Below, piece after piece: positions 808 through 20,506 of a DNA stretch of 20,506 nt. The translations under genes were made by a program, and so were the position numbers. The notes beneath the pieces were generated by a model. It was not told the DNA's origin, searched no databases, and worked only from the letters and a program-made list of their open reading frames with translations. Numbering within the stretch: the stretch's first letter is position 1; each line of letters opens with the position of its first letter. The DNA comes from Selaginella moellendorffii (Eukaryota > Plantae > Lycopodiophyta): contig NW_003314319.1 of assembly GCF_000143415.4 (NCBI RefSeq), forward strand, positions 1-20,506, in the 5' to 3' direction.

Positions 808-832
808 GAAGCTCTATTTCGTTAAAGTGGGA
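808..832 (+). repeat. Left terminal inverted repeat GAAGCTCTATTTCGTTAAAGTGGGA
   Basis: Reverse complement of 13162-13186 is GAGGCTCTATTTCGTTAAAGTGGGA; one G/A mismatch. Confidence 0.9.
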
Positions 833-1497
833 TTTATTCAGTAAAATGGGACTAGGTACAAATTTTCAAGTATTTGAAAATGACGTGAAATTATATGTTT
901 TTTGTCCAAGGGCTAGACATATCTGGGGCATGGTGACTAGCACGGTGACTTTGTGTCCAGACTGAGTCCATCTGGTTATATAATAAATCTCATTGTCAAG
1001 GTGAACAAGCCGAATCTGAAGCTAAAGAAGAGCGATGGCATGCGCGCACACACTATTTGTTTGTTCATTGAGCTTGTGGTGAGCTTTCCAAGATGAACGT
1101 CATTCCTATTAGCCAGACATATAACTTAATGGTGAGAACATTTAGATATTATTCAATGTTATCTTTTTCTAACGAATCTAATTGTGAAGGTGTAGCAAGA
1201 GGCATTGCTAGTCTGGAGAAGTCATTTAACTCATTTGACCCTTAGTGTATTTTCATGAAACTAAATAACATTCATAGTATTAAGGAATTTCTCTAGTACC
1301 TTTTTTTTACGGCATAGAGGCTTGCATTTCTTTCAAAGGTGATTTAGTAAAAGGCCTGAGGGCACATGCCATTCTATTTCTCAGACCGGTATTAAGATAT
1401 ACTAGTGCAAAGGGCCACATGCCATCACGCCTCCTCTGATTCAGATTCGGATTGTTCACCTTGAAATAAAATACATTAGAAACTTAGTAAAGGAATA

Positions 1498-4400
1498 TTA
1501 ATGAATCTCACCTTGAACCCGGGTTATGAATGCTCTTGCTACATCTCTTACATGGTCTGGCAAGGTGATGGTGGCACTCTGCTTCCACATCCAACCATGC
1601 ACAACATTATCCACCGATATGCTCATGCTAGGATCCCTTGGATTCAGCACCAACCTTTTTTCTAGGCAATCCTTCGTATATCCGGAACTTGGCTTGAACC
1701 ACTCCACAGTTACATTGAAGGAGTTAGTTTCCGCGTCCTCCTCTGCATCAGTGATGCAGCGCCCCACCCATATCATTTGTTTTTTATTACTGGGTCTGAC
1801 AAGCACGACCATTCCTTTGCAAACCTGTACTGGATTGAATGCTGAATCCGGCTTCTTGTTCCTCGGCCCACAATAGTGATCCTCAACATCGTTATCTGTC
1901 ACTGCATTTCAAGAGGACATTGTTCCGCTACTATCTGGTGCTCTGGGTTCTGGCCAAAAGGACTCTTCCAATTCTTCATATACAACCGGCCCATTTTGGA
2001 TAGTAGATATAATCTTCTCCTAGTATTCGAGCAAAGGCTTGCACCTCTTAAAATAGGATTCTCCACCAAACACCAACCCCCTCTTCCAGAAGGCAATATG
2101 CTGTCTAATCCCGGCCACTATACTTTCCTGGTCTTTGAGTCCATCCGGGTGTATCGGCCGTGGGGAACCCTGAGGAATCATAGGTTCCCCAGTTATGGGA
2201 TCTCTCTTGAAGAGTTCAATGCCGTCCACTGGCAGCCACACTGTGTCCCATTCTCTCATCTTGTACCTCATCACTGGAGCACCGTCACGCATGCTGAAAT
2301 GAAACTGAAGAGGCTTGGAGTGGCCAATCAGCATTTCGGATCCGTCCCTGATATAGCCTCTTACAAACCCCTTAAAGTCTGGAACCTCTGTCACAAGTGC
2401 AGCTTCAACAGTGCCTTTGATGCAATTTTGGAATTCATCGTAGAGTTGTGGGAGGGTGAGGACATTGGATCGCTGGAAGGACTCTGCCAGGTGACTGAAC
2501 ATGGCATCGACGTCTTCATGAGTGTGCCCAACCATGAGAAAGCCAAGTGTAACCGTTTCAAATATGCCTTTGGCAACAAGCATCGCCAAGTACGTGAAGA
2601 CGTACATGTTTTTGTTCTTACTGCCAGCATTGTCTGTTTGGAGCAGAAGATGGGGTGGAAGGCCACATTGGCTGCAAGAACTTCCTTGAGATTCTGCTTC
2701 GTTTGGATGAGGCTGTGCATTCACCGGGCGACCAGCCTCGTCGGAATGGCATGAGGCCTCACGTGATAACCTTACAATCTGACGGCCAACATATTCACTG
2801 GGATGGCATGGGGCCCCACGCGATACTGCAAGCCTTTGCTCCTCCTCCAGCTGAACCCTGTATGGGGTTCGATCGACAAGGGCCTTATGCAAGGGTTGGC
2901 TGTTCAGCTCAGTCTGCGCACTTTGCAGAGACCTTAAGTGTTTTGCTAGGGACGCAATCATCATGTTTGCACCCCCGCCACCCCATAGAGGTACAAAGAA
3001 GTTCCCATAGTTCTAGGCACCATGCCCATGAGCGATTATGCCAAACAGAGACACAGGCAGCTGCATGGATGAAAAGATTGCCTTGGGGGTAGGATTGAGT
3101 CGAGGTAAGCACGTCTTTTTTTGGTCCATTTTGTCATGGATGATGCAGAGGTAAGAGTCAGGTCTCTCCATGGAGAGAATCCTGTTATGATAATATGCAG
3201 TCCTGCAGCTTCTCTGCTCGATGTTGTGGTCGAGCCGCCTTCTAACCAACGTCTCTCACTCTTGAGCGCTGCAAAAATTCTTCGACAAAGCTATTTTGAT
3301 AGCAGTGCACTCGTCACACTTTGAAAAGCTAGAGTACTTTCCCCTACTCACATCCCTGAACCTGTTGCTCCACAATCTACTAAATCTAGATTGGCTCAGC
3401 TTCCTGTAGCCATTACTCTGGAGTTCCCGATTCACATCTTCCAATATGGCCCCCTTGGTATACATGGAAGGGAGAACTCGTTGGGTGTCTCGTGTTCCAT
3501 CTTCCAAAAGGCGGGTTTTATGTGGTTGCTGCTCGCTACATGTCTCGACAAACCTCTTGAAGATTGCCTCTCCATATACAACATGACCCCTGGTTTTGTG
3601 CGTACCGTCGTTCCCATGGACTGCCTGTTGAACACTTTGTTCCTTGAACTCAGTTTTGATTCTATAGAATGTGGTTCGAGGGACTCCATAAATGATTCTC
3701 CATGCCTTCATGCAGACCAAACCCCTCTGGAAGACCATGCCCCCCACCTGATGTTCTGAAGCATCAACAGATAACCGTAATGCCTCATACACAAAATTGC
3801 GAGTTGCCTTCCAGGACAATGTCTTGTATCTTGCTCTCTCCTCTTCAATAGCATCCCAATCAGCATGTTGACAGCACCTCCTCTTGCAACAAGCAACTGT
3901 CGAGACCATTCGAACCTCCATCGCCATTTTCTGCCTTTTCGGTTCGTTGCTCAGATCCCTTTGGCTGTGCTGTAGGAAGGTGTACTTTCTTTTCCCATGA
4001 AGAGATGTTCTGTCATCAGTTGTAGTGGTGTTTGATTGTGAATCCTTCACATTCTCAAACACTAAATGCCTCAATTTCCACCGCACAATGCTTCCAATAG
4101 TCAGATTGTTTTCTTCTGTGTCAACAACCTCTAAAATCGCAACTCCAATATCATCCCAGCCCAATTCTTGATTAGCAACCGCATCTCTTGGATCGACAAC
4201 TGTGGCTAAGCCCTCAGCTACCACCTCCCCCTCGGGGTTGTTTAGAAACACCTTTGCCTGAATCCATGTAGCACGGTTCTTAAGATCCATGGAGGGAACA
4301 TGCGTCGCACTTGCTCTATCCCCAACATCTGCTTTCTTCTGCAGATTTTTCAAGGCAACAACAACATTTACCCCGACGACCATCTCTCCTCGTTCAATAG

Positions 4401-4566
4401 CGACCACATTCCCATCGAAGACAGTCTCTACTGATACAGCAGCATTGCCTTCCCCAAGCCTTTGACAGTGTATAACAAAGTTCCGATCCATAGACACAAG
4501 GGTCCCTTTTGCAACTCTCTTCCCACCATTCAAAATGTAAACCTTTTCCCCAACCCTGAAGGCCAT
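1498..4566 (-). pseudogene. DDD transposase, Sola1-like/DUF7869-type, ~1020 codons, interrupted by 4 premature stops
   Basis: ORFs 3256-4566, 3013-3249, 2020-2964 and 1498-1902 share one frame, separated only by stops at 3256-3258 (TGA), 3013-3015 (TAG), 2020-2022 (TAG) and 1909-1911 (TGA). Motifs: CCKRRCC, VCMKAWRIIYGVPRTTFYRIK (HTH-like), FSKCDEC, and catalytic-type IIHDKMDQKK / LQTDNAGSKNKN / FLMVGHTHEDVDAMFS. Confidence 0.85.
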
Positions 4567-4567
4567 T

Positions 4568-4868
4568 CTGAAAGTGCAGAAAAGAAGTTAAGACCATACA
4601 AAAAATGATTGGAGAATGGCCTAAATCATAACATACCAAATAGCATGAGGCCACATGCCATTATTCAAACATGCTATTGACACCCACGTGAAATTTCGCA
4701 TTCACAAAATTGGCATGAGGCCTCATGCCATCTTGATATACACACAGCTGCAGGCAAGTAAAAACATACATGACAATACGCTAGCCATGAAATTGCAAGG
4801 GCCCAAGATGGCATGTGGCCTCATGCCATTTCTAAATGTGGTCCTAAACCATTCCATGGTGAACATAC
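4568..4868 (-). other. Predicted 5'-UTR intron of the transposase gene containing three palindromes
   Basis: Minus-strand acceptor cttttctgcactttcag ends 1 nt before the ATG; best donor TG|GTATGT at 4868 (alternative GTATGT donors at ~4636 and ~4769). Palindromes at 4640, 4710, 4808. Confidence 0.5.
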
Positions 4869-4920
4869 CAGGAAGCACAAGTGCCGAATATCAAGAGGAA
4901 GCGGTAGCCACACCAAAGAC

Positions 4921-5110
4921 AGTGCCGCTCGCAACACCGCAACTACTCGTAGCGCCGCTCACAACACCGCAACTGCTCGTAGCGCCGCTCGCACAAACTG
5001 CCACTCGCATAAACTGCCGCTCGCAATGGCGCTCGCAATGCCGCAACCGCTTGTAAACGCATAAACCACAGCTCACAACGCCGCTTACACAAGCAGCGCT
5101 CACTGCGCTC
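4921..5110 (+). repeat. GC-rich tandem repeat (30-bp unit AGYGCCGCTCRCAACACCGCAACTRCTCGT x2+, then degenerate CGCTCRCA units)
   Basis: Units at 4921-4950, 4951-4980 and partial 4981-4993, with further GCCGCTCGCA-like copies to ~5110. Confidence 0.85.
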
Positions 5111-5852
5111 AACGGAACCAAGAACACGGTGCACAAAAATGATAGACCTAGGAATGAATTCGAGAATTCAAAAATAACACACGCTTGAACGTCACATCAA
5201 ATCCTCTGACAAACCAGATCTTATGATTCCTCTGACAAATTTCAAACTGAGTAGCTTCTAGACTTTGCTGTCGGAGGTTGAACTTTGTCACATCATGTCC
5301 TTGCCTCGATCCAGCTGTGCCATGTCAGTGATTCGAACTTTGCCATGCCATGTCAGCGATCCGCGCCAAGATTATTCGCCGTGTAAAGGAATAATTATGC
5401 TGTGTGTGTACGTCCATTTATGGCAATATAAGGCCACACGCCATTCAAAGAATAATGCTAGTCGAGCATTTTTTGGTGCATTTTTGGGTTCAAAATTGCA
5501 TGAGCCCACACACTATAAAGTTTACCTGTACCAAAAATAGAAACAGCTTTATTTACTTGGGAATTTAAGTGGTTGAGGCATTTTTAAACTTATAAACACA
5601 TGCCCTACTTACATTCATTTGGTTGCTTGAAATTCAAAAATATTATAAACCTTTCTTTTTGCATTTTCAATGTTTTCAATTATGGTTTTTGATTTTCGCA
5701 GGACCAGCCTAGTAATCTATTTGCATCCCGTCATGTTTATAGCTAGCTTTCGTTTGTCCCCTTCACTGGCCTGAGATACATCTGCTCGGAATCTGCCTCT
5801 TACAGCATTTGCCCAGAAAGGGCATCTTTCTTCACGCAGCATTTGCCACATG

Positions 5853-5884
5853 TTTAGGGTTAGGGTTTAGGGTTTAGGGTTTAG
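5853..5884 (+). repeat. Interstitial plant telomeric repeat (TTTAGGG-type, ~4.7 units)
   Basis: tttaggg ttaggg tttaggg tttaggg tttag. Confidence 0.9.
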
Positions 5885-6357
5885 CAATTCAGTAGCTTGA
5901 TAAACATGCAAATACAGAACTTGATGCAAAATCCTTTGATATGTCACAATGCCCCTAGGACCATAAACACATTTCAATAGAGAGGGTCCTTTCATTTCAT
6001 AACTCCTTACGTAGATCTTGGTGAAACCAGAGTTAGTGAAGTTGGTTTCTTGTGATCCCGCATCTGATTGTGATGTCCCTTTGCAGTGTCAATGGAAAGG
6101 TCAATGCACACCAAACTGTAGAATCTTGGAGCAAAATAACGGTCGGATCTATGGCAAATGCCCCTGAAACATTGTAAGGCTCGTGTGGTCTTATGTGGTA
6201 TCTGATCGAGATGCTTCTTTGCAGGGTCATCAAGAAGGACATTGTATACCATTCTGTAAAATCTAGTTGCGATCTAACGGTTGGATCTCCAGGAAACTCA
6301 AAACAATATCGCGCGTGTCAAAATATTTTAGGAATATACTCCTATGTGCTCCTGAAA

Positions 6358-6483
6358 ATGGCATGCGGCCCCACGCCATTCAAGAGATAACGCCAGATGA
6401 CGCCGAGCATTTTTTGGTGCATTTTTTGGGATCAAAATTGCATGAGCCCACACGCTTGAACGTCACATCAAATCCTCTGACAA
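6358..6483 (+). repeat. Composite direct repeat of spacer segments ~5420-5511 and 5178-5212
   Basis: 6449-6483 is identical to 5178-5212 (35 bp); 6404-6453 is nearly identical to 5463-5511; each long copy is preceded by a palindrome plus TCAA. Confidence 0.85.
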
Positions 6484-6779
6484 TTTATTTAGCTGAACAT
6501 CTGGCATTTTTGGAAATACAAGATGCTTTGGAATATCCAATCATGCATGGTATAAATATAGCGAGGGTATTAAATGATATCCCAATCATGATCTTTCTTT
6601 TGGATTTCGCGTGCATGCAGTCCGAGGAATGATGACGTTGCGGATTTCTTTTGGATTTCACGCATTCGCGCGCCGATCCAGAAATTAATGGTGGCGCCCA
6701 AGTCCGAGGAATGATGACGTGGCGGGATTACCAACCGTCGTGAGATTTCGCGCGTGTGAGGTTAGGTTTTGCATTTTGC

Positions 6780-6925
6780 TTCGTACTCGCGCTCGCACAC
6801 TCGCGCTCACATCGCGCTCCCACTCGCGCTCCCACTTCTCTACAGGTTTCTCGTGTGCATCGGCGTCCACTCGCGCTTGCATCACACTCGCGCTCGCATC
6901 GCGCTCGTGTGCATCGGCATCCACT
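6780..6925 (+). repeat. GC-rich ACTCGCGCTC(G/A)CA-type degenerate array upstream of the cargo gene
   Basis: Multiple CTCGCGCTC/CGCTCGCA units. A 20-bp direct repeat AGTCCGAGGAATGATGACGT also occurs just upstream at 6620 and 6701. Confidence 0.8.
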
Positions 6926-8034
6926 TCAAGACACACCCAGTTTGTAACTTTGCCGCCAACTCCGCCGCCCACTCCGCCACCCACACGCAGCCCACTTGGT
7001 GTCCCGGGAGATTTCAGCGCCACTCTCCAACTGTAAGTGGCAGAGTAGCCTTGCTGCTACGATCTGCTGCACACACAGTGCACATTCGCCAGCGAGTCCG
7101 ATTGTCACGCCTCCATTCGGCTTCAAATGGTAAGTCTTTTAGGCCAAGTAGAAAATGGCATGAGGCCACATGCCATTCAGTAGCAACATTGGCATGCACC
7201 GATTGGGCTCTCGAGTGCAGTCCGGTTACAGATGGCGTGTAGCCTCACGCCATCTTAGGATGCAGCCTCAAGACATCTGATGCAGTGGTGAATGGCGTGT
7301 GGCCTCACGTTATTTCCAGCTACTAGCTTTTCATCTGTCAGCTCTAATTGTTGTGCATTTCTGAACAGGCGAGGAATTGCGTTCTTCTTCCAGCCATTGT
7401 CAATGTGGATGCAGAGAAGGGGGAGGAGCTCACCAGTTGGACTTTCGGGATGGAAGGCGAGGATCTGAGGCTATACAACACAGATGGTGGGAGAAAAGAA
7501 TGCATGGGGATCCTCATCCAAGTGACAGACACTCCATGCAGTTCCATACAAGAATATGGACTGGCACTTGTGGTAGAGACAGCGTCTGCCTTCAAGATCC
7601 ACCTTGCACATCCTAGCGGCTTCCCGGAGGGGGGCAGCGGCTATGAGGAATTCCTAGAGGGAGCTAGGGAGAGGTTGTCCAGGAGGCCCACAATTTCAAA
7701 GACGCTGCGGGTCTATGAAGATCACATGGAATCCACGGACCTCACCTACGGCGATGTTCAAAAACTATATTCCAACATTGAGCCGTTGAGAGTGACTCCA
7801 GTTCGCAAAGCAAAGGGGAAGGGGGTCGATCTGGAAACTACCTCGAAGCAGAAAAGGGTGGTCAAGCTCAAGCCGACGTCCGACTCTCCTGCTCCAAAAA
7901 AGAAGCTACTCAGTGATGCCATTGCCTCGGGTTCGAACACTAAACCCACCAAAAAGAAGAGCCGCAAAGAGCAGAAAGAGCAAGAAGAGGCAGCAAAAAT
8001 CGTCGCAGATAATAGTACTTGTTACTATTCCAAC

Positions 8035-8420
8035 AAAGTATATACAATCGACGTGAGCCGTATCGACATCCAAAGCAAATACAACCACAGGCTAGTATCT
8101 GATGAGTGGGTAGAGAAACTGAAGCAGAAGATGCTGGCAAGTCCAGTAACACTCGACATCGCAGACGTGATCCCCTACTACTGAACAATGAAGGGCGAGA
8201 CGAGGTTTCCAGACTTGATCAATAGGAAGGTGTTGGACGATCAGAACATCCGGTTCTATGCCGTCTCCGGGCAGCATTCTAGCTTGGCGATGCAAGAGAT
8301 AGTTGTGGATATTATGGTGGGCGAGGAGGTGAAGAAAGTCTTCAAGACAAGAGTTGTCCGCCTGATAAAAGGCAACTCGCCCCTCCGATCTATCATATAC
8401 ATCTCCCACGCGCAGAATGT
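8035..8420 (+). other. ParB/Sulfiredoxin-like domain region of the cargo protein
   Basis: IDVSRIDIQSKYNHRLVSDEWVEKLKQKM...FYAVSGQHSSLAM resembles the ParB/Srx N-terminal strand-(N..R)-helix and the hhhhxG(Q/E)HRxxA motif; the conserved Arg is replaced by Ser. Confidence 0.55.
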
Positions 8421-9269
8421 CAAGCAAGAAACGTGCTACAAATCGGGTCTGCACGAGACATTGGCACGAACACAGAAGCTCGGGTTCAACTGAAGAAGCC
8501 ACAAAAACCAGGACAAGGACGTGCACTAGCAACTAGCGCCTGGCAGGTAAGCCTCGTTGCATGTGGCATAGCATGTGGTCTCACGCCATTTCCATTGCAG
8601 GAATTCTCGAGTCTTCTCTCGAAAACACTGGGGGTCAATGACACACTCAGCATCCATAACATTCTACTCGCGACAAAAGTTGTTTTTGACAAATGGGTAG
8701 ATGTGCTGAGGAGGTACCATGACGGGGAGTTGCCAAACTCAATGGGTGTGGAGGACGGCCGGAAGCCCAATGATTTGAAGCTCAACGCCTTGCGTTTCTC
8801 GCGGTCTCTAGACGACGACGACCTTCTGATAGTGGCTAATGCTCTTCTACGTGGTGAGGTAGTCTTCAACAAGACCAAAATGACTCCCGGCCATATTGTG
8901 ACATACGAGGACTTGTGCACGACTCTGAGAGCTCGTGCGCTATTGAAGGATTGGATCTTCGAGCAAGTGGCCGTGGAGAGGGTGAGCATCGACACCACGC
9001 AAGAGATGATGGAAGCGCTGGAGTTGTCAAATGAAGACATCGACGAGTACGTGAAGGGGGCCCCCAAGTTCATCGATCTGCTGCGGGATGCCACGAAAAG
9101 TAAAGCTGAGAAGTTGGATCAGTATCCAAATTTCATTAAGATTGATGTCGACCGCCGGCTTCAGAAACAGCTCGACCCCGCAGTAGGGGCCTATCGAGAA
9201 CCTGACCGGGTATACTTGAATTCGGATGAGGATCAAAGGTGGAGGAGCATCGTTTCCCGCGGAGATGAG

Positions 9270-9900
9270 CAGGTCAAGAACATCTTTTGTGTGATGGACT
9301 TCACAAACGAAGAGATCACTCATGCAGACGAAGTCAGCTCCATCATTGACTTAATGGTGGGACTTGCGGAGGTGGAATCTTCAGTCCACTATATGATCTA
9401 CGACTCCGAATCCTATCACAAGTTCTGGAAGGCCTTGAACGAGGTGAAGGCTCGGTTGAAAGGCAAGGAGATGCGGGAGATCCATGGGATAATGGCTAAG
9501 AAGAAGATACCGACGAATGTCTGCATCTTCACACTCGCCCTTGTTATTGGTCCTGCAGCAGAGTGGGACTGGAGTGACTTCCCAGCTTCGTTCGACAAGG
9601 CCAATCGAATTGATCTGAGGGAGGTCAATTTACCCGTGCCTGAGGAACTGAAGACGGCTATGGAGCTTTCGAATCCAAAGAAAGCTCCAGGTGTAGCATG
9701 GGAAATGCTCAGCTGGGTCTTCAACGCAATAGCGGGTGGGTCACCTGCTTCCGACTCCAAGGGCAAATGCGTTGTCGAGTACAACTGCGGCGGACTATTC
9801 TTTCGAGCCGCACTACTCAAGGGTGTCCCGTGTGTTGCGGTGACAAACTCCATTGAAGAGGTGACTTCAATGGAGCATATAATTACAGTTGCCAAAGAAA
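9270..9900 (+). other. Degenerate beta-class (N6_N4_Mtase-like) DNA methyltransferase fold, probably inactive
   Basis: Motif order resembles beta-class MTases: NIFCVMDFT (DPPY position), SSVHYMIYDSESYHKFWKALNEV, NPKKAP...LSWVF, CVVEYNCGGLFFRAALLKGVPCVAV (cf. VLDPFxGSGTTxxAAxxxGRxxIG). Confidence 0.45.
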
Positions 9901-11881
9901 AACAGTATCTTCTCTGCGAACCTGGTGAGTACACACTTTAAGTTTAAATGTTATCTCACAAGCTCTGTATGCAGGAGCGTGGCCACCCCCAGATGCTGAA
10001 ACGGCATTAACAGCTACTGTTGAAGATACCCATGTTGGGCCGAGCTCACAACTTGCACAAGGTAAGGTCACGTGAGGCCTCACGCCATTTTGATTATAGA
10101 TTGTTGTGAATATTCAGACACGAGGACTGAAAAGCGCACTGGTGGCGCATCGAAGAAGGACAAACAGACAAGCAATAGGAAAAAAGGAGGTACAAATTAT
10201 ATTTGCAATGGCGTGTGGTCTCATGCCATTCCTTGCAGGAGAAACTTCTTCAAAGGCAAAACAGGCAAGCACCAGCCAAGCTCAAACTGACAGTGGTCAT
10301 AAAAAGTGAAAGCACGTTGGACAGTCGTCGAGATCAGAGGCGTTTGATTCGAAAAGGAAGAAGGGCAACGAAAAGATGATAGGTAATGCCTCGCGGTTAT
10401 GGCGTGTGTGCTCATGCCATTCATTGCAGATCAAGGGCTGAGTGAAAGCAGGCAGTCACCACCTCATGACTCAGATTCCTATGGCGGACTCCCCTTCCCC
10501 AATCTCAATGGAGAGGTACAATGGATGAGGGAAGCTTTTCAAGTCAGGGCCACGTTTTTCTCATCTCGTCGTCTTCGAAGGGTGCAAGAACGTGCAGAAA
10601 CCATGTTAAGACAGTCGGGTGAGGATACGGTCCTAGGTCACGCACTAAAACAGGGGATGTCTTGTATTTTGAGATGGAGACTCGGCCAGATGATTTTCCC
10701 AAGATGGTCCTGGAAGAACAAGCCATCCAGCCTGAGCAGCCTATGGAAGAAATGCAGGAGGGGGATGAGGAGCCAGAGAAAGATAATGAGCAGGAAGAGC
10801 AGAAGGACGAAGAGGAGGACAAAGAAGAGGAGGACGAAGAAGAGGAGGACGAAGAGGACTTGGATGGTCCTCACAATGGTGACGATCACAATAACGACGA
10901 CGACGATGATGACGACGATGGCCAGCCTGAGGTGGCCAAAGAGCAGCGGAGGAAGGTCATACAAGACAAACTATCAGGTAAATAATAGTACATCCATTCC
11001 TAACCTTTTACCATTTCTAACATTGTCCATGTAGGTCGCAGAGCAAATGGTAAGTAGAGATTATTCAGTTGAATTTAAAAACTCTAGCCTTTAGTGTCGA
11101 GGAAGGATAGTGCCAAGCAAGGGTCGAAACGTATGTCCAATCCTTCAGAATCAGCAGTGCGCCCAAGTGATATCGGTCCTAGTTCTTCAATACCAGTTGA
11201 TGGTAAATACAGTATAGTCGATTCAATGTGCTAATGAGTTTGTTTTTAGTAGCACGGGAGGATACCATCTCAATCGAAGGGAGATATTTGGACATGCATA
11301 TGGATCCGCCAGTGGACTCTACTTGGCTGCAAGAGTCATCAGAGCTGGTGTAGGCTACTATCCATATCAACACCAAGCAAGCTGACCACGCTCCACTTGA
11401 TGCTGCCCATACCACTGAGTCAATCTTGTCCACGTATCCAACTGACGGTGACCAGGTGCCATTGGACCCACATGAGGCCGCCCCAGCCGCCGAGCCGGTC
11501 GTATCCTCATTTCCAACGGACTCAATGTGTGCCCAATCGTCTGACTACGCGCCGTTGGAACCTCCCTACACCGCCCCTGCTGCCTGTTCGGTCATGTCCA
11601 CTTTGCCAACGGAGGCACCAGCTGAAATGGTGTGTGATCACACGCCATCGGAACCACCCCATGCCACTGTTGAGCCAGTTGTACCAGAGTCTACAGCTGA
11701 AATGGCATGTGCCCACACGCCATCGGATGCGATTGACCCCACATTGCAGAGGAGAGTATTTCCGCCCTTCACGTTTCCTCGACCAAAACCCTCTCAACGA
11801 CCATCGGGAGCAACATTTGCTAATATTGTAGATGGTAAAATTGACTTGTACCATTTTTTATGCTGACGCATTTCATTTCAG

Positions 11882-12480
11882 AGTCACTGCGAAGGTACTG
11901 TATCGTTTTTGATCTGAACGGTGTCCTTTTCTCCCATGAGCGTGGCTCGTCCTCGAATGTCACTGCACCCTCCAAAGCCTGCGGTCGCAAGTTGGTCAAA
12001 AGAGACAGATTCACATTAATCACACGGGAGAAACTGCGGGATCTAATAATGACCATGCGACACTTAAAACAGAGGGCCGGGTTCAATTTGCAATTGGGAG
12101 TTTGAACATCCATGATGCGCCACAATGCATTAACGTTGCTACAGATGATGCACGATCAGACGCGAGTAATATTACCATTTGACTTTCTCCTAACGCAGGA
12201 GGATTGCTTGACTATGGTCCATGTGAGGGGTAGCAAGCCCATCTTCGTCAAGCCAGAGGCTGTAGTGATGAACCGGACTGCTAGCTCAAGTGAAATCCTC
12301 ATCATCGATGACTCGCCGATTAAAACTGTAGCGAACACGCACACATATGTAGTGCACCCCATCTCTTGCAGTATGGAAACTAGGGAGAAGAAACCGTATG
12401 TTCTGGGGGACCTTGCAAAACGGCTTGGAGCGATGGTGATAGAGAACCGGCCAGTCCAGGAGGTGGCTGCAGAAATCAAC
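11882..12480 (+). other. FCP1/NIF-like HAD phosphatase domain of the cargo protein
   Basis: HAD motifs: IVFDLNGVL (I), GV[W>stop]TSMMRHN (II), KPIFVKP (III), ILIIDDSPIK (IV). Confidence 0.8.
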
Positions 12481-13161
12481 CAAATGGCAGATGGAACGGT
12501 ATATCAGAAGCCATTTGATCGGACAGACACCAGTCATCATTTATGGCATGTATATTGTCTAGCCAAGCACTATCCGCATCTCCATAATCTGCTCAACCGG
12601 ATGGGTTCTTCGACCATTGAACATGAGCGTGGACGTATTAGAGAAGATATGGCATTACTATTGGGTTTAAATCCTGATAGTGTGGAGAGTGATGAAATTC
12701 CAAGATTATTGTATAGGCGTTGGAGGCAAAAAATAACAGTTTGAGATGGCATGTATTTATTTTAAAATGTAACTTATTATAGCATGGGGTTCCATGCCAT
12801 TGTATTAATATTAAAAGACAATTCTTTGAGAGGATTTGCATTATACTAGAAGTGTTACAGCATGTTATTGGAAGTCTACGAAGTTGTTTTATTAATAATG
12901 GGAAAGTAAAGATTGAATGGGGACTTGGGCTCCACCTAGACTCGGAGCAACTGAGCCAATATTAAAAGGATGGAAAGAAATTGGACGACGATGACAAGGA
13001 GAAGAGAGAGGTGAAGCAGTGGCGGGGGAGGAGAAGTGATTGAGTAGACATTTCATTGTTTAAAATAAAATGGCATGTGCCTCAATGCAGTTCAATTTTG
13101 TTATATTTATATACTATATAAAGGTTTGGAAACCTTATTTTACAAGTGGGATAATGACAAT

Positions 13162-13186
13162 TCCCACTTTAACGAAATAGAGCCTC
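13162..13186 (-). repeat. Right terminal inverted repeat (TCCCACTTTAACGAAATAGAGCCTC on +)
   Basis: Pairs with 808-832. An extra inverted sub-terminal AAGTGGGA at 13144-13151 forms a local palindrome with the TIR. Confidence 0.9.
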
Positions 13187-14308
13187 TTGATAAGTTATGG
13201 CTTTTCGCAATACCACATATTCTTTGTGATTTGCTCTGAATTGGTCTTTTGGGTTGAGACATCAAAGTAGGATGTTGTAAACACTTGCTTAAGCAACTTG
13301 AGTTTCTTTGTATTGTTAACTGGGATCTATTTAGATTGGCTAGTGCGATGGTTGGCATGAATGTTATGTTTGTTTGTCTTGCAACATTTATTTTGTTTTG
13401 TTGATCATTGTTTGAGTTAGTTCTGATAGATTGGGACATTATTTCCTTTGGGTGATACATTCGCGAGCATTGTGCTTGTTAGTCAATGATACTTTGTGTT
13501 CTTTGCATTATCTTTAGTAAGTTGTTTGGCATACTGTCTACCATCTTCGGTAATTAAGTTTCATTATTGAGTTTCCTTGATGATATACTTGCTATTGAAT
13601 TTTGTTGGTTGGTCAATCCTAAATTTCCAAAAATGATGATCTTGGTGGTTCTTATACTATAATACTAGTTTATCGAATGATCACTTACTTGGAATACTTT
13701 TGTGTTCTACTCTAAGATTTAATCACTGGTATTTAAGTCTCTAAGATATCATTGTCTATGACTTTGATATTGTCCATCTATTGATCTTTGAGTTTGGGCC
13801 AGTATAGGTAAACTGGCTTCGGCACTTCGTGTGCATGGTGAAATCTCTAGTCATGGGGTAGTTATTGTCGACTGGTCACATCACCCGCCTCTTTGTCGAT
13901 GTTCCTTATTCCGTTAAAAAGGGCATGACCGTGTAAACAACTCTAGCTACCTGTTTACAGTAGTCTATCTAAACCTTACCGACGGGTTTGGCTTCTTTGC
14001 TCATGAGAGTTGGGGCCTCTAGCTTCTCTCTCTATGTCCCTGCGGGCAGGGGCATATCACACTTTTGTAAGCTAGGTGACACCCAGAGCAGCAAGAGTGG
14101 CTAACTCTATTGGTCATTTCCTTGTCGACGACGGCTGGAAGGTGTCTGAGCTAGTAGCGCATCCGCATTAGACAAAGAGGTTGCCTTCTAACTCATTTAA
14201 GTTGGTGCATTTCTCACATAGTGTGAACAGTGTGAACTTTTTCTGGAGTTGTTTCCTTGGTGGTATTCTAGACTCAAGTATACATCAACGAGGATGTCAA
14301 TCTTCCCT

Positions 14309-14320: not shown

Positions 14321-15772
14321 TGTCGTGAATATGACTTCGGGTATCAAAAATTACCTGTCGGCTAGTCCTTTTGAACACTCTTTCCTTACTGCCACGATGG
14401 CAGGAGGTCAATATTGCTGGACCCTTTATTAGTCCCTATTGTGCTAGTGGAGTTAATTGAGCATTTCGAGTGTACTTAGACCGGACAAGCATAAGGACGG
14501 AATTCCTATGTATTATTAGCTAAGCATACTTAGCTCGGTAAGGAGTTCCCGTCTCGTTTTATCTTGCACTTGCTAGTGACAAAAACCCTCGCGTATTGAA
14601 ATTAGTCCCTCAATATCGCTACATGATAGCTTACTGTGTCTGCCAAACACCCTTGCTATCATGCCCTTTGTGTTTGTCTTATTTCAGTCCTAAATGTTAT
14701 TTATGGAAAGTGTCCAGATTTGCTCTTTTGGCATATCTACGGAATGTAGAGATTAGCCTGAACATAATGGTGTTCGTCCCGTGTCCAAATTTGCAATTTA
14801 GCACCATTCCAAATTTAGTAAGTTTCAACTTGTCCCAGAGACTAACTCCTGATACTAAAGGAGGCTTGAGTGAAAGCCCAAAGCGTGTGTTCCTCAAGGG
14901 GGGGGTTGGGGTTCCAAATATATAGTAGGGATATTGGGTAGTTCGGGCATGGCCAACCAACCTGAGGCATAATCTAGCTCCTACTTGCGTGCCTTTCCTT
15001 GTTCTGCTTCCGGCTTATGTCTAAGCCCAAGTTCCATTCCATGCTAGTTGGTGGAGTACTCATGTCCTTGCGTTAAGCCACCGGTATGTCGAAATAGTGC
15101 CAGACTCCGTTTGGCTCCATTTTGTGTGCTAGTCTTAGCATTAGGATGTTGGTTGCTCTAGGACTGTTCCAAGTCACTCCGGGCTCCTGTCCCTTCACTC
15201 CTTGGGCTGTATATTTAGGAGTTGCTCCGTGGTCCGGTTCCGTTGCTCCTTGGCTTCATACTTGGGAGTTTGGCACCGTTCCTTCGTTCCGTGGCCCAAG
15301 GCCCTGAACCTCGGGTCTGCACCACTGTCCTTTGGACACATGGCATATGACACATGGCATAAAAAGGGTTTAGGTTCCACTTTGTGGTGTTATCCTATAG
15401 TAAATCACTATAGGATAAAGGGTAAAAACCACGTGTGCTACACTTTCCTTCTATATTTGAACCCCATGGATCGTATTTTAAGTTGTTCCCTTTGATTGCT
15501 TACACTTGGATCCATCTCAGACTCCATCTCGAGTCTATCTCGAACTCCATCTGGGGTCCATGTTGGGTCCATTTCGAATCCATATCGGACTACATCTTGA
15601 AGTCCATCTTGGGTCCATCTTAGGTCCATATTGGACTCCATCTCGGACTCCATCTTGGGTCCATCTCAAGTCCATATCAAACTCTATCTCGGACTCCATT
15701 TCGAATTTCATCTCGGATTCCTTCTTGAACTCTATCTCAGACTTGTTCTTAACACTTCAATATGTCACGACA
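14321..15772 (+). mobile_element. 3' LTR (~1.45 kb) of a probable Gypsy-type retrotransposon
   Basis: TGTCGTGA...TCACGACA terminal inverted repeats (TG...CA), preceded by a PPT; homologous copies at 19400-20506. Confidence 0.8.
15507..15745 (+). repeat. 11-12-bp tandem repeat (GGACTCCATCTC / GGGTCCATCTT variants) inside the LTR
   Basis: About 20 degenerate TCCATCTY-core units. Confidence 0.85.
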
Positions 15773-16610: not shown

Positions 16611-17422
16611 ACATAAGGATTGGCAACAAGAGCAAGAGGAGTTGTATCATGTGCTGTGAATGTTGCTGTTAACTGAATTTGATTGTTCAATTACAACCAC
16701 ATAGCATTGAGTAACTACATCAATTATTGCTCCATAGTTAAAGGAGGAGGAGATTGTTATACCATAAAGATAAATAAAAAGGAAAAAGTAGAAGAGAAAA
16801 ATTTGAAAAAGCTATAAGGAAAGTGAGATCTAGATAATGCTAAAGCAAGATTTAAACCAAAATCCTAAATTTAAGCACTTCTTAAGGACAATCAAAATTG
16901 CCCTTTTCCACCAATGTGACTACATAAAATATGAAAATAGAATACAGAAATATACATCTTCATTAACTTAAAAACTTTAGTTTATATATAAAAGCAAGTG
17001 GTCTGGATTGAAATCAATCTAAGGGCTATCAAAATCCACTATATTAATATTAATATACGGCTGTTAATATTAGTATATGGCATTATAACTGTACACTTGA
17101 ACCCCACATATACTACTTTTATTCCTTTTAGATAAATCTTGATAATATAAAATTACATGTGTCTAAGTTTTGTTCACAAATTCATGCCTCTTTTATTTTT
17201 ATTTTTTAATTCTTTTCTCATTCTTTTGACAAGTGGTTCCACTTAGAACATATGTAATAATCTAATTAAAAATGATTTTCTATTAAGCTGAGTTTTTTAT
17301 GCTACTAGAAATAGTACAAAAGGAAATATTTCTTAAAAATAGGAGTTTTTAATTGATTTAAGGTATTAATTGTACTAATCTAGAACTTAAGGAGATTATA
17401 CTTGTTAGTTAAGCTGCACTTC

Positions 17423-17874
17423 ATGGGGTTTTTAATGTTTTTTACTTTAATTATAAATATTTTTAAGTTCTTTGTAAGTATAATTTTAAATAAGTAATTC
17501 TTACTCTCTTTTCTATATTTATATAGGTTATAACACATAGTGATTTTTTTGATACATGTAATGGTAGTACAATGAAGCTTATAAGAATTGATGATAATGA
17601 TGAAAGTAAAGGTTGGCAATTTGAAGCTGTTTGTGAACCTCTTATAAATCAAAAATCAACCATTACTCTTAATAATTGTATTACAAATACTAATGGGACT
17701 ATGGGTCATGGTCGTGATTTTCAATTATCATGTAATAGTGCAATTGTAACAATATCATATGATGGTTTGGTAAAATTATCAGCATTTTGCAGTACTTTTG
17801 GTGGCCTTCCAAATCCAACTGGAATTTATTTAAATTATATTCTTGTAAATGTAAATGGTCATCTCAAATGTTAG
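17423..17874 (+). CDS. Secreted cyanovirin-N homology (CVNH) lectin, 2 exons (17423-17473, 17527-17874), 132 aa
   Basis: Hydrophobic leader MGFLMFFTLIINIFKFF, 53-nt phase-0 GTAAGT...TAG intron, then two CVNH half-repeats: FFDTC...FEAVC...ITLNNCITNTNGTM and FQLSC...LSAFC...IYLNYILVNVNGHLKC. AATAAA at 17879. No lesions seen. Confidence 0.8.
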
Positions 17875-17910: not shown

Positions 17911-18262
17911 TAAAATTTTTTTGACTACTTTATTAAGTATATTATGTTATAAATATTAATTGATATAGTAAAGGTATTTTAAAAGTGTTTTAAAAGAAAT
18001 TTTATAGATTTTGCTTTATAGTCATTAAATTAGAAAAATTTAATTGATAAGGTCCATAAATATATTCGTGTGTGTGTGTGTGTCTATATATATATATATA
18101 CACACATGAATATATTTATGGACCTTATCAATTAAATTTTCTAATTTAATTACTATAAAGCCAAATCTAGAAAATGTCTTTGAAAACACTTTTTAAATAC
18201 CTTTACTAAATCAATTCATATTTACAACATAATATATTTCATAAAGTACTCAAAAAATTTTA
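17911..18262. repeat. Long AT-rich inverted repeat (~160-bp arms, (GT)n/(TA)n loop); foldback/MITE-like or hairpin RNA
   Basis: 17911-~18072 is the reverse complement of ~18100-18262 with scattered mismatches, near-perfect close to the loop. Confidence 0.85.
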
Positions 18263-18270
18263 GGCAACTA

Positions 18271-18370
18271 NNNNNNNNNNNNNNNNNNNNNNNNNNNNNN
18301 NNNNNNNNNNNNNNNNNNNNNNNNNNNNNNNNNNNNNNNNNNNNNNNNNNNNNNNNNNNNNNNNNNNNNN
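18271..18370. other. Assembly gap (100 N)
   Basis: Run of N. Confidence 1.
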
Positions 18371-18382
18371 ATAAAATTCTAT

Positions 18383-18543
<161 letters not shown>

Positions 18544-19399
18544 ACAAGGCAACTAAACATTATTTCATCAAGTGATGAGGAATTTTTTTTAGAGGTTGAT
18601 TTTTCTTATTACAGTTTCGATTTCACATCTGATCTTAAAAATGAATATAAATATCCAAAATATGGTCTTTGATTGAGTTTTGGATTCAAGTAATCAATTT
18701 ATCTATACAATGTTGTACTTAGTATATTACCTTTCTGTTGGACATATATATAACTTAATGATATGAGTTTAGTGTTTAGGTTTATAAAGGTGAACTAAAA
18801 AGTAATTGTTGGTTGTTTGGTGACTAATGATTGCTTGTATATTTCATTGAGGACTACTGGGATTTTATTTAGCTTGATAATGTTTAACAGTGATAAGTTT
18901 GCTTTACGAGATGTGTTGTGGAGGATCATGTTGTTGGGATTGCATGATTTTTGTATGTTAGCATATTGATTCCATCTCTATCTATATTATTTTGTTGCAT
19001 TTAGTTTTTGGTGTCAAATTACATTAAGTCTAGGATGTGGTAATAATTTATTATCTATACCTGAGTATTATTCCAAAATTAACTAAATAAGGTATCTTTA
19101 ACCTTAGTTAGTTTAATTAGTAGAGAGCTTTAAATGGTGATTCTTTTTTAACTTTATTCAAGTGGAGCATCCTTTCAATGAGAAACTTTTAATAACTATT
19201 TTATCCTCATTTATCCACCACTTTATCTTTTTCCCTATAAACCAAATAAATAAAGGAGCCTTGAAAGCTATTTTATCCTTATTCATCTTATAATTGAATT
19301 TATCAATACTTCTGTTGTATAAATTAATTATTCTATATGAAGTAATTAATCATCCCAGGGAACTAAATTATACCTTAAGTTAGTTAGCAATGTTTGACC

Positions 19400-19860
19400 T
19401 ATCCACTATCCTTATAAACCCCTCCAAAGGAATGCACACTTTAGGTTTATACCCCAGTCCCAGGAGTTAATCTTTAGAACAATTACGAAAACTTATTAAA
19501 TATAGAATGACACTAAATTGTGAATTTGGACACAAGAACAACACCATCATGTCCAAGACAACCTTTACATTCTGTAGATATACCTCATTAGCAAATCTAA
19601 ACACCTCCATAAATAGTTCTTGAGACTAAATAAAACCAACACATGTGTTATGATAGTGAGAGTGATTTGGCAAACACAGTAAGCTATCATTTAATAAATA
19701 TTGAAGGACTAATCTTAATATCATAGGGTTCTCAACATTAGTAAGTACAATCCAACGAATGAGTTTCTTTAACCATGTCAAGTATGCTTGATTAATAAGA
19801 TTTAAGAATGCCATTATTATGCTCTTTTGGCTAAGTGCATATGTAAAGATTAGTTTCTCA
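19400..19860 (-). mobile_element. Diverged LTR fragment homologous to ~14500-14905
   Basis: Reverse complement shares blocks such as ATGATAGCTTACTGTGT(T/C)TGCCAAA, TGTCCAAATT..CAATTTAG and TAACTCCTG with the 14321-15772 LTR. Confidence 0.7.
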
Positions 19861-19907
19861 ACTAGTTTGGGTAGAAATTAAAGGGTTCAACAATACTAAC
19901 ATTCTAC

Positions 19908-20506
19908 TATCGTGGTAATAAAGATTATTTGAAAGGACTCACTAATAGGTAATTTTTGTGCTTCTTAGATTCTATAAACTTCTATTTAGTTGTAGCATAT
20001 ATGGTTTTCACCTTTTACCCTATGGTGATATACCATAAGATAACCATAAAGAAGAACTTAAACCTTTTCCAATGGTAGTATAGTGAAATTTAAGTTTCAA
20101 GGTTTTGGGCCACTGAACGAAGGGACAAAGCTAAACTCCTGAAGAGCAAAAGAACTAAAGCACAAAACAACTCTTGAGCATTCAATTTAAGGAGCAAAGG
20201 GACAGGAGCATGGAGTAATATTAAAATAGTCTTAGAGCATCTAACATCCCAATATCAAACCAACATGCAAAATGGAGCTAAATAGAATTTAGTGCTATTT
20301 TGGCATACCTGTGGCTTGACCCTAGGATATAAGTACTCCACTAGCTAGCATAGTATAGAGCTTGCACTTGGATATAAACCAAATGTGGGAACAAGGACAA
20401 ACACACCATGTAGGAGTTAGATTAATACTTTAAGTTGGTCCGGCAATGCCCACTAATCCCATGAGTTACGTCTTTTGGGACAATTTATGAAAACTTACCT
20501 AAATAT
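19908..20506 (-). mobile_element. Diverged LTR 3' portion homologous to ~14930-15440, running off the window edge
   Basis: Reverse complement shares ATGCTAG..GTGGAGTACT, GCTCCATTTTG, GCTCCTGTCCCTT and CCTTCGTTC.GTGGCCCAA with the LTR; it ends in CCACGATA (cf. TCACGACA). Confidence 0.75.

Follow-up and report, generated by a model that had tools for sequence, protein, structure and literature searches.

How does a transposon mark itself, and which of its own proteins reads the mark? The question is raised by a 20,506-nucleotide stretch of the lycophyte Selaginella moellendorffii genome (NCBI RefSeq assembly GCF_000143415.4, contig NW_003314319.1, positions 1 to 20,506 of the forward strand), hereafter the window, in which a 12,377-bp transposon unit at 809-13185 carries a transposase gene, a large accessory gene in divergent orientation and an array of palindromes found within the unit. 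The unit belongs to a multi-copy Sola1 family of autonomous type in S. moellendorffii, of which it is a dead member. Its accessory gene is a stable, conserved partner and not a one-off capture, because the same layout recurs in a second, deeply diverged Sola1 element, called L088/L005 after the locus L005 and its extension L088. As for the reader of the palindromes, the chances that it is the accessory protein are judged to be even; the N-terminal region of the transposase is a less probable candidate, and some other binder is rather unlikely. ParB-type accessory genes in giant DNA transposons were first described in 2025 and only from algae; the Selaginella family carries this design over to a vascular plant, offering two complete, deeply diverged elements and a phosphatase-type head for comparison.

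The Sola1 element, its ends and its palindromes

The element is bounded by a 24-bp terminal inverted repeat (TIR) at 809-832 on the plus strand and its inverted match at 13162-13185 on the minus strand, the pair differing at one A/G transition. The 21-nt core of the TIR is exact at both ends and has exactly two matches in the window, at 812-832 (plus strand) and 13162-13182 (minus strand), against an expectation of 0. A perfect 4-bp target-site duplication (TSD), CTTG, is visible at 805-808 and 13186-13189 because the TIR is read out to 24 bp. An 8-bp TSD with matches at five of eight positions was dropped, as the exact 4-bp CTTG emerges once the TIR is taken two bases longer. The Logan contig L002, from another sequencing run, is 94-98% identical to parts of the element, and an internal deletion fuses position 2434 to position 941. 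This copy ends at the same TIR (809-832), in different flanking DNA, and the TIR therefore delimits one other copy at the least, in a family that yields deletion derivatives.

The minus-strand gene at 1498-4566 is a pseudogene of a Sola1-type DDE/D transposase of ~1020 codons in a single frame (Pfam DUF7869, 1.5e-38), and 66 homologues with the same Pfam domain were found. Its catalytic block, from DN..NKN to MVGHTH..D..FS, is identical by eye at 26 of 52 positions to the curated transposase of Sola1-1_Ec32, a Sola1 element of the brown alga Ectocarpus, and an upstream Cys motif is also common to the two proteins. A DDE/D transposase with a Sola1-type core, a 4-bp TSD and TIRs are thus all present, and the element is classed as a Sola1 DNA transposon on its shared catalytic block, DUF7869 and 4-bp TSD. 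Read from 4566 to 1498, the frame contains four in-frame stops, at 3256-3258, 3013-3015, 2020-2022 and 1909-1911. Two proteins from other copies, P0001 and P0017, are ~95% identical to the window transposase and have Arg or Gln at the first two of these positions, while more distant homologues have Trp at the third; every one of the four stops goes back to a C>T or G>A transition. At the N-terminus (4566-3900, minus strand) lie two tandem small domains with a weak match to TNP1/EN/SPM (PF03017, E 0.022), corresponding to DUF8039 in relatives, and this tandem domain is a candidate second DNA-binding part of the transposase.

The palindrome array consists of 17 matches to the 22-bp palindrome ATGGCRTGNGGCCNCAYGCCAT with at most three mismatches (0.01 expected) and ~5 further half or degenerate sites. 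All fall within 1035-13091, and none occurs in the 8.0 kb of non-N DNA outside the element, a confinement with a chance probability of ~2e-4 for 17 sites. The left subterminal region has a half-site at 1035-1042, a full palindrome at 1351-1372 and a degenerate one at 1404-1425. Two palindromes (2746-2767 and 2803-2824) occupy the hypervariable linker of the transposase gene at 2746-2824. The divergent intergenic region between both genes (4567-7449) has palindromes close to each gene: those at 4640, 4710 and 4808 stand within 250 bp upstream of the transposase ATG, and those at 7155, 7232 and 7292 within 200 bp upstream of the accessory gene, with a degenerate site at 5423 and a palindrome at 6358 also in this region.

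The array continues into the accessory gene, where the palindromes are bracketed by GT...YAG at 40-55-nt distances, fitting short introns. Three of them, at 10067, 10208 and 10399 (10062-10428, plus strand), are each flanked in this way and mark candidate introns. A further one at 8568-8589 lies inside a 54-nt mini-intron with canonical GTAAG...CAG ends (8547-8600, plus strand), whose codons are missing from P0002, a host protein homologous to this part of the gene; P0002 lacks exactly the 18 residues that would equal the 54 nt. The palindromes at 11627-11648 and 11702-11723 belong to a duplicated 75-bp unit (11627-11723) upstream of one or more phosphatase-like exons, and the right subterminal region (12543-13091) has a palindrome at 12779-12800 and half-sites at 12543, 12746 and 13070. 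The first 28 nt of L002 (1-28) form a perfect palindrome with the same half-site in the opposite arrangement (ATGCCAT...ATGGCAT), which may be an assembly artefact at a hairpin.

Decay has reached sites and genes alike. CpG positions in the palindromes have turned into TpG or CpA in 19 of 34 cases, and C>T and G>A transitions have disabled both genes. Together, the CpG decay and the transition stops are what a methylated, silenced element would be expected to leave as its signature.

An initial annotation, made from the letters of the window alone, had outlined a TIR-bounded 12.4-kb unit at 808-13186 with a divergent transposase and large second gene and ~21 palindromes confined to it. The unit is borne out by the TIR pair, the CTTG duplication and the copy L002, with its limits moved to 809-13185; its TIRs do bound another copy, L002 stopping at the same one; the divergent layout is real and recurs in L088/L005; and the confined array is confirmed as 17 full and ~5 partial sites with none outside. 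Nor is the cargo gene a one-off capture, which would have told against that annotation: the second family, L088/L005, has the same divergent gene and layout.

A second family with the same layout

Locus L088/L005 holds a complete second Sola1 element of ~18.8 kb, flanked on both sides by the TSD CTTC and ending in TIRs of its own that are identical to each other at 22 of 24 positions. Its transposase gene is divergent from a string of long open reading frames (ORFs), among them a GQH region, a middle ORF with a motif-I-like end, and a NIF domain. By homology within 10 kb, L005 had looked cargo-less, and it was the extension to L088 that exposed a complete, diverged accessory gene. The TIRs of the window element and of L088/L005 agree at 17 of 24 positions (p ~1e-4), whereas the accessory proteins are barely alignable. 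The palindromes have been replaced altogether: L088/L005 carries 19 copies of an unrelated 21-bp palindrome that shares nothing with that of the window, seven of them upstream of the transposase, seven upstream of the accessory gene and five between accessory ORFs, with none in 12.5 kb outside that element. The copies upstream of the transposase (L088 2415-3100) mostly read TTATCTTCGA..., and those upstream of the accessory gene (9359-9966) mostly TTATGYTCGA..., so these are two positional sub-types of one site.

Parts of the accessory gene were found at other loci. NIF ORFs stand opposite decayed Sola1 transposases also at L021-23 (Pfam 5.2e-6) and L052/53, and in contig L007 the N-terminal region is joined to the middle module. 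On one strand of L006 (Logan, ERR5554644), a middle-module homologue is accompanied by an ORF with a better-kept motif I (IDAFSGG) and a SET ORF (Pfam 4e-5), the ORFs lying at 32-1303, 1402-1755 and 3318-3941. As the arrangements in L007 and L006 show, the accessory family is modular and its enzyme heads are exchangeable.

Palindrome arrays were also found at L004 (~20 palindromes), L008, L020, L021-23 and L054, and in the family of L003 and L015. L003 has an intact two-ORF transposase with 18 palindromes on both sides, and L015 has 10 copies. No second gene or long ORF is detectable within 10 kb in L003, and at L004, L008 and L020 the array is present and cargo undetected. An apparent NIF motif in L003 proved spurious, having arisen by chance in a frame rich in stops that lies beyond the element. 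In L003 (12064-12151), one palindrome lies precisely within the 58 nt that separate its transposase ORFs (10001-12064 and 12122-12982), a position that parallels the palindrome-in-mini-intron pattern of the window. Hidden Markov models (HMMs) built from relatives do not recover even the window's own accessory pieces, and single-linkage clustering of 80 metagenome loci merged 63 of them through unrelated shared repeats.

Parts of the accessory protein and their known counterparts

The accessory gene region (7450-12744, plus strand) is ~5.3 kb long, multi-exon and broken, with long ORFs that follow one another in different frames, two in-frame TGA codons (8182-8184; 12103-12105) and one or more frame breaks near 8440-8480. 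Its product may be read as three parts: a putative DNA-targeting region at the N-terminus, a middle module that would derive from a degenerate methylase-like fold, and a C-terminal NIF/FCP1-type domain. When the 502-aa central ORF was compared by HMMER with 1.8 billion representative proteins, six weak matches and no close one were obtained, and the accessory gene is therefore annotated nowhere. Pfam returned nothing for any accessory-gene ORF piece at E up to 10, sequence searches of the PDB with the ORF pieces, a 10-row middle-module profile and a 4-row N-terminal profile gave nothing relevant, and the C-terminal piece had no match in a word-index search.

The N-terminal region (8035-8420, plus strand), which was called ParB-like at motif level, is collinear with ORFs of L007 and L088 and is interrupted by the stop at 8182-8184. 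The signature F-x-[IV]-[NS]-G-Q-H-[ST] occurs in the window, L007 and L088 only, among 870,586 aa of six-frame ORFs. No ParBc match in Pfam or sequence match in the PDB was obtained for the window pieces, the intact L007, L088 or the 4-row profile, and no helix-turn-helix (HTH) was identified in the accessory protein.

The middle module (8475-9941, plus strand) consists of a helical domain and an alpha/beta part and has weak homologues in P0002, P0003/P0011 and P0006/P0016. The best match, P0002, is a 451-aa host protein that aligns across the whole module at ~25% identity. It is encoded in the host by SELMODRAFT_409495 / LOC9650508 (two alleles; L001 10001-11425, GL377575.1), a stand-alone middle-module homologue to which the proteins P0008-P0010 are also assigned, and whose neighbours are ordinary genes (SCAR, ArfGap and VQ). 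This gene may be a domesticated transposon module or the source of the middle module. The window segments 3-643 and 17006-17056 are 68-87% identical to DNA beside it (L001 8487-9415) and represent an unrelated dispersed repeat.

At its end, the middle module has a stretch that resembles the SAM-binding motif I (D-x-F-x-G-x-G) of beta-class amino-methylases and reads VVEYNCGG in the window, EYGCGG in P0002, DINTGG in P0011 and DAFSGG in L006. None of ten family members matches the beta-class methylase family PF01555 in Pfam; the catalytic (D/N/S)PP(Y/F) was not found, and the aligned motif-IV position reads VMDFTNE. An AlphaFold2 model of the 502-aa ORF has a predicted local distance difference test (pLDDT) score of 53 and is confident only at ORF residues 55-225, the helical domain. 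Foldseek and VIA-align return generic alpha/beta matches at Z ~6 for this model, which is poor in the methylase-like part. A tblastn search of plasmids with L007 and P0011 for bacterial ParB-methylases gave no match. The methylase-like label thus stands at motif level only, on the degenerate motif-I-like stretch.

The C-terminal part (11860-12744, plus strand) resembles HAD phosphatases of the NIF/FCP1 type, both by its HAD motifs and by homology to the L088 ORF. Motifs I (IVFDLNGVL), II (GV*TSMM) and IV (LIIDDSP) occur once among the six frames, in order and in one frame, a combination met in none of 300 shuffles, although the patterns were composed after the sequence had been seen. The window pieces fall below the Pfam NIF threshold, the domain being split by a stop, and are collinear with the L088 ORF (BLASTP 2e-4 and 0.002). 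That ORF is itself a Pfam NIF domain (PF03031, 3.8e-12, 46.6 bits), and the L021 ORF matches at 5.2e-6. The 212-aa C-terminal piece gave an unusable AlphaFold2 model (pLDDT 38). Through its relative L088, and only by that route, the NIF/FCP1 phosphatase label is supported. The cargo had initially been described as ParB-like, methylase-like and phosphatase: the last of these has support by way of L088, whereas the first two did not get beyond motifs, nothing specific having come from Pfam, PDB or fold searches.

The architecture had also been thought undescribed, which it is not. Ectocarpus has the 21.5-kb Sola1-1_Ec32, for which a 4-bp TSD is given; on the strand opposite its transposase, a gene encodes a protein of 1104 aa that has a ParB-like part and a DNA-methylase part (Dinatale, Craig et al. 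2025, Genome Biol, PMC12477816). Such proteins were proposed there as a possible new accessory class that binds and modifies its own transposon, with reference to Iyer et al. 2011 and Petroll et al. 2025. The window element is similar in its Sola1 catalytic block, 4-bp TSD, giant size and large accessory gene opposite the transposase. Unlike it, Sola1-1_Ec32 has a recognisable N4/N6 methylase, no phosphatase and 282-bp TIRs, with no palindrome array reported, while the Selaginella element combines a degenerate methylase-like part with an added NIF phosphatase-like domain in a land-plant host, the accessory proteins being compared by description.

Comparable genes occur in an unrelated superfamily. 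In Plavaka (KDZ) elements of the red alga Bostrychia, PAG3 joins an N-terminal ParB-like region to a 2-oxoglutarate oxygenase, inverted-repeat arrays adjoin PAG3 in each family, and a self-binding hypothesis has been proposed (Petroll et al. 2025, bioRxiv 10.1101/2025.02.11.637652). The points of likeness to the window element are an accessory protein with a putative DNA-targeting N-terminus and an enzyme-like domain, and arrays of inverted repeats. The transposase superfamily differs, and the Plavaka arrays are tandem beside the gene, where the window sites are scattered over the whole element, introns included. The layout of L006 resembles PAG2, the methylase and SET accessory gene of red-algal Plavaka elements. 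Compared by description, the window accessory gene agrees with the algal ParB-type accessory proteins in position, orientation, modular build and palindromes. New here are a host among the land plants, a head of NIF type in which DxN is conserved, sites placed in mini-introns, and a two-family comparison in which TIRs were kept and palindromes replaced.

Other systems offer functional rather than sequence parallels. In the En/Spm (CACTA) elements, TnpA binds 12-bp subterminal repeats, and PIF/Harbinger elements have a Myb-like protein; both have two genes, the transposase dealing with the element ends and another DNA-binding protein of the element sitting on repeated sites overlapping the promoter, and the CpG-containing sites are sensitive to methylation. 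They have no sequence relation to the window element, the sites bound are short subterminal motifs instead of 22-bp palindromes, and enzyme-like domains are absent. VANC of the Arabidopsis Mutator-type element VANDAL21, to which the initial annotation had likened the cargo protein, has a demonstrated hypomethylating effect and is thought to recognise short motifs in its own non-coding DNA. The likeness is that of a transposon-encoded protein thought to read motifs accumulated in its own element; however, VANC is an unrelated protein from the Mutator superfamily with short, non-palindromic motifs, and the window copy looks methylated and decayed, the CpG decay of its sites showing methylation and not protection. 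Bacterial ParB-parS likewise pairs a multi-copy palindromic site with a protein for which the window gene was claimed to have a similar ParB/Srx-type N-terminus, but the window protein has no Pfam or PDB match, no GxxR arginine and no identified HTH.

Candidate readers of the palindromes

If the accessory protein is the reader, it would dock on the palindromes and so address its own element, while the transposase would recognise the TIRs, which are conserved across families with unrelated palindromes. Once docked, it could take part in building the transposition complex, in the manner of En/Spm TnpA on its subterminal repeats, or it could change transcription or silencing locally. This reading is favoured by the comparison of the window with L088/L005, in which the TIRs were conserved while palindromes and accessory proteins turned over, and by sites that span the whole element, including the accessory-gene introns. 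It also has precedent in En/Spm and Harbinger, where the accessory protein occupies the repeated sites.

Several observations weigh against it. The arrays of L003/L015, L004, L008 and L020 have no detectable cargo, and the transposase is common to all array loci and therefore the more parsimonious binder. The N-terminus of the transposase, with its tandem DUF8039/TNP1-like domains, Cys cluster and HTH-like stretch, varies between families, and this variable part could read the palindromes. The ParB-like label of the accessory protein is at short-motif level only, with no profile support even in the intact relatives: the Arg of the ParB/Srx Gly-x-x-Arg box is absent in all three (GQH[ST]), and the window has TCT at that codon, a triplet that the decay of an Arg codon would not give. 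The enzyme head may be impaired as well, as the second Asp of the catalytic DxD is absent (DLNG in the window and L088, DLNE in L052/53); the phosphatase may be inactive, with DxN as a family trait.

The strongest alternative is accordingly that the palindromes are transposase-binding sites, serving as subterminal and internal repeats and as operators of the two promoters, while the accessory protein would work elsewhere, or on chromatin, and would not read them. This explanation is a serious possibility, held tentatively. It draws on the arrays around transposase genes with no detectable second gene and on the variable, putative DNA-binding parts of the transposase itself, yet the negative cargo searches have low power, as is evident from L005 and from the HMMs that miss the window's own pieces. 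Nor does it sit well with TIRs that are conserved between families when palindromes are not, or with sites that lie far within the element and in introns of the accessory gene, unusual places for transposase sites, and arrays also occur beside ParB-type genes in the unrelated Plavaka superfamily. The pattern of kept TIRs and replaced palindromes and accessory proteins makes the question of the reader directly testable. Should the accessory protein read the palindromes, the element would be a small natural system that directs an enzyme to a specified DNA address; should the transposase do so, this would be an ordinary case of subterminal binding sites.

A more elaborate version of the accessory-protein reading, which must be called speculative and rather doubtful, makes the protein a self-addressed modifier of transcription or chromatin. 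A fast-evolving N-terminus would read palindromes in promoters and spliced-out mini-introns, so coating the element without breaking its genes, and at the element the NIF/FCP1-type domain would act on the C-terminal domain of RNA polymerase II, or on plant Pol IV/V partners. Lineages would have exchanged the enzyme head (methylase, SET, oxygenase or phosphatase), and eukaryotic DNA transposons would share a modular system, common and extending to land plants, on the principle of "bring your own chromatin enzyme".

Alternatively, the palindromes could act as nucleic-acid structures, as hairpins or cruciforms, in small-RNA production, as intron marks, or in the replication or repair that accompanies transposition. 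As inverted repeats they are perfect or nearly so and have no spacer, and several lie in transcribed mini-introns, but an 11-bp stem with no loop makes a poor RNA hairpin. Moreover, the sequence is strongly conserved within a family, in its centre too, which points to sequence-specific reading. Across families the palindromic form is kept and the sequence is not, and a structural role is considered improbable. Least probable by far, and largely refuted, is a mere passenger status of the second gene, by which part of a host gene would have been picked up in a single Pack-type transduplication and would do nothing for the element: the middle module does have the stand-alone host homologue P0002 in an ordinary gene neighbourhood, but its identity of just ~25% excludes a recent capture, the same multi-part gene stands in the same orientation in the complete, barely alignable second family L088/L005, NIF ORFs occur in two more families (L021-23 and L052/53), and Ectocarpus Sola1-1 also has an opposite-strand accessory gene.

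Outside the element, the window has a few further features. An ORF at 17572-17874 (plus strand), in an AT-rich stretch beside the assembly gap, passes the curated cut-off of the Pfam domain CVNH (cyanovirin-N homology) with 4.2e-08. Two inverted repeats of 128 nt, with 89% complementarity and a spacing of 93 nt, are followed by that gap of 100 N and by an extended (TA)n tract (17913-18261 and 18271-18545). Other inverted repeats, larger and diverged, pair 14710-15133 with 19489-20380.

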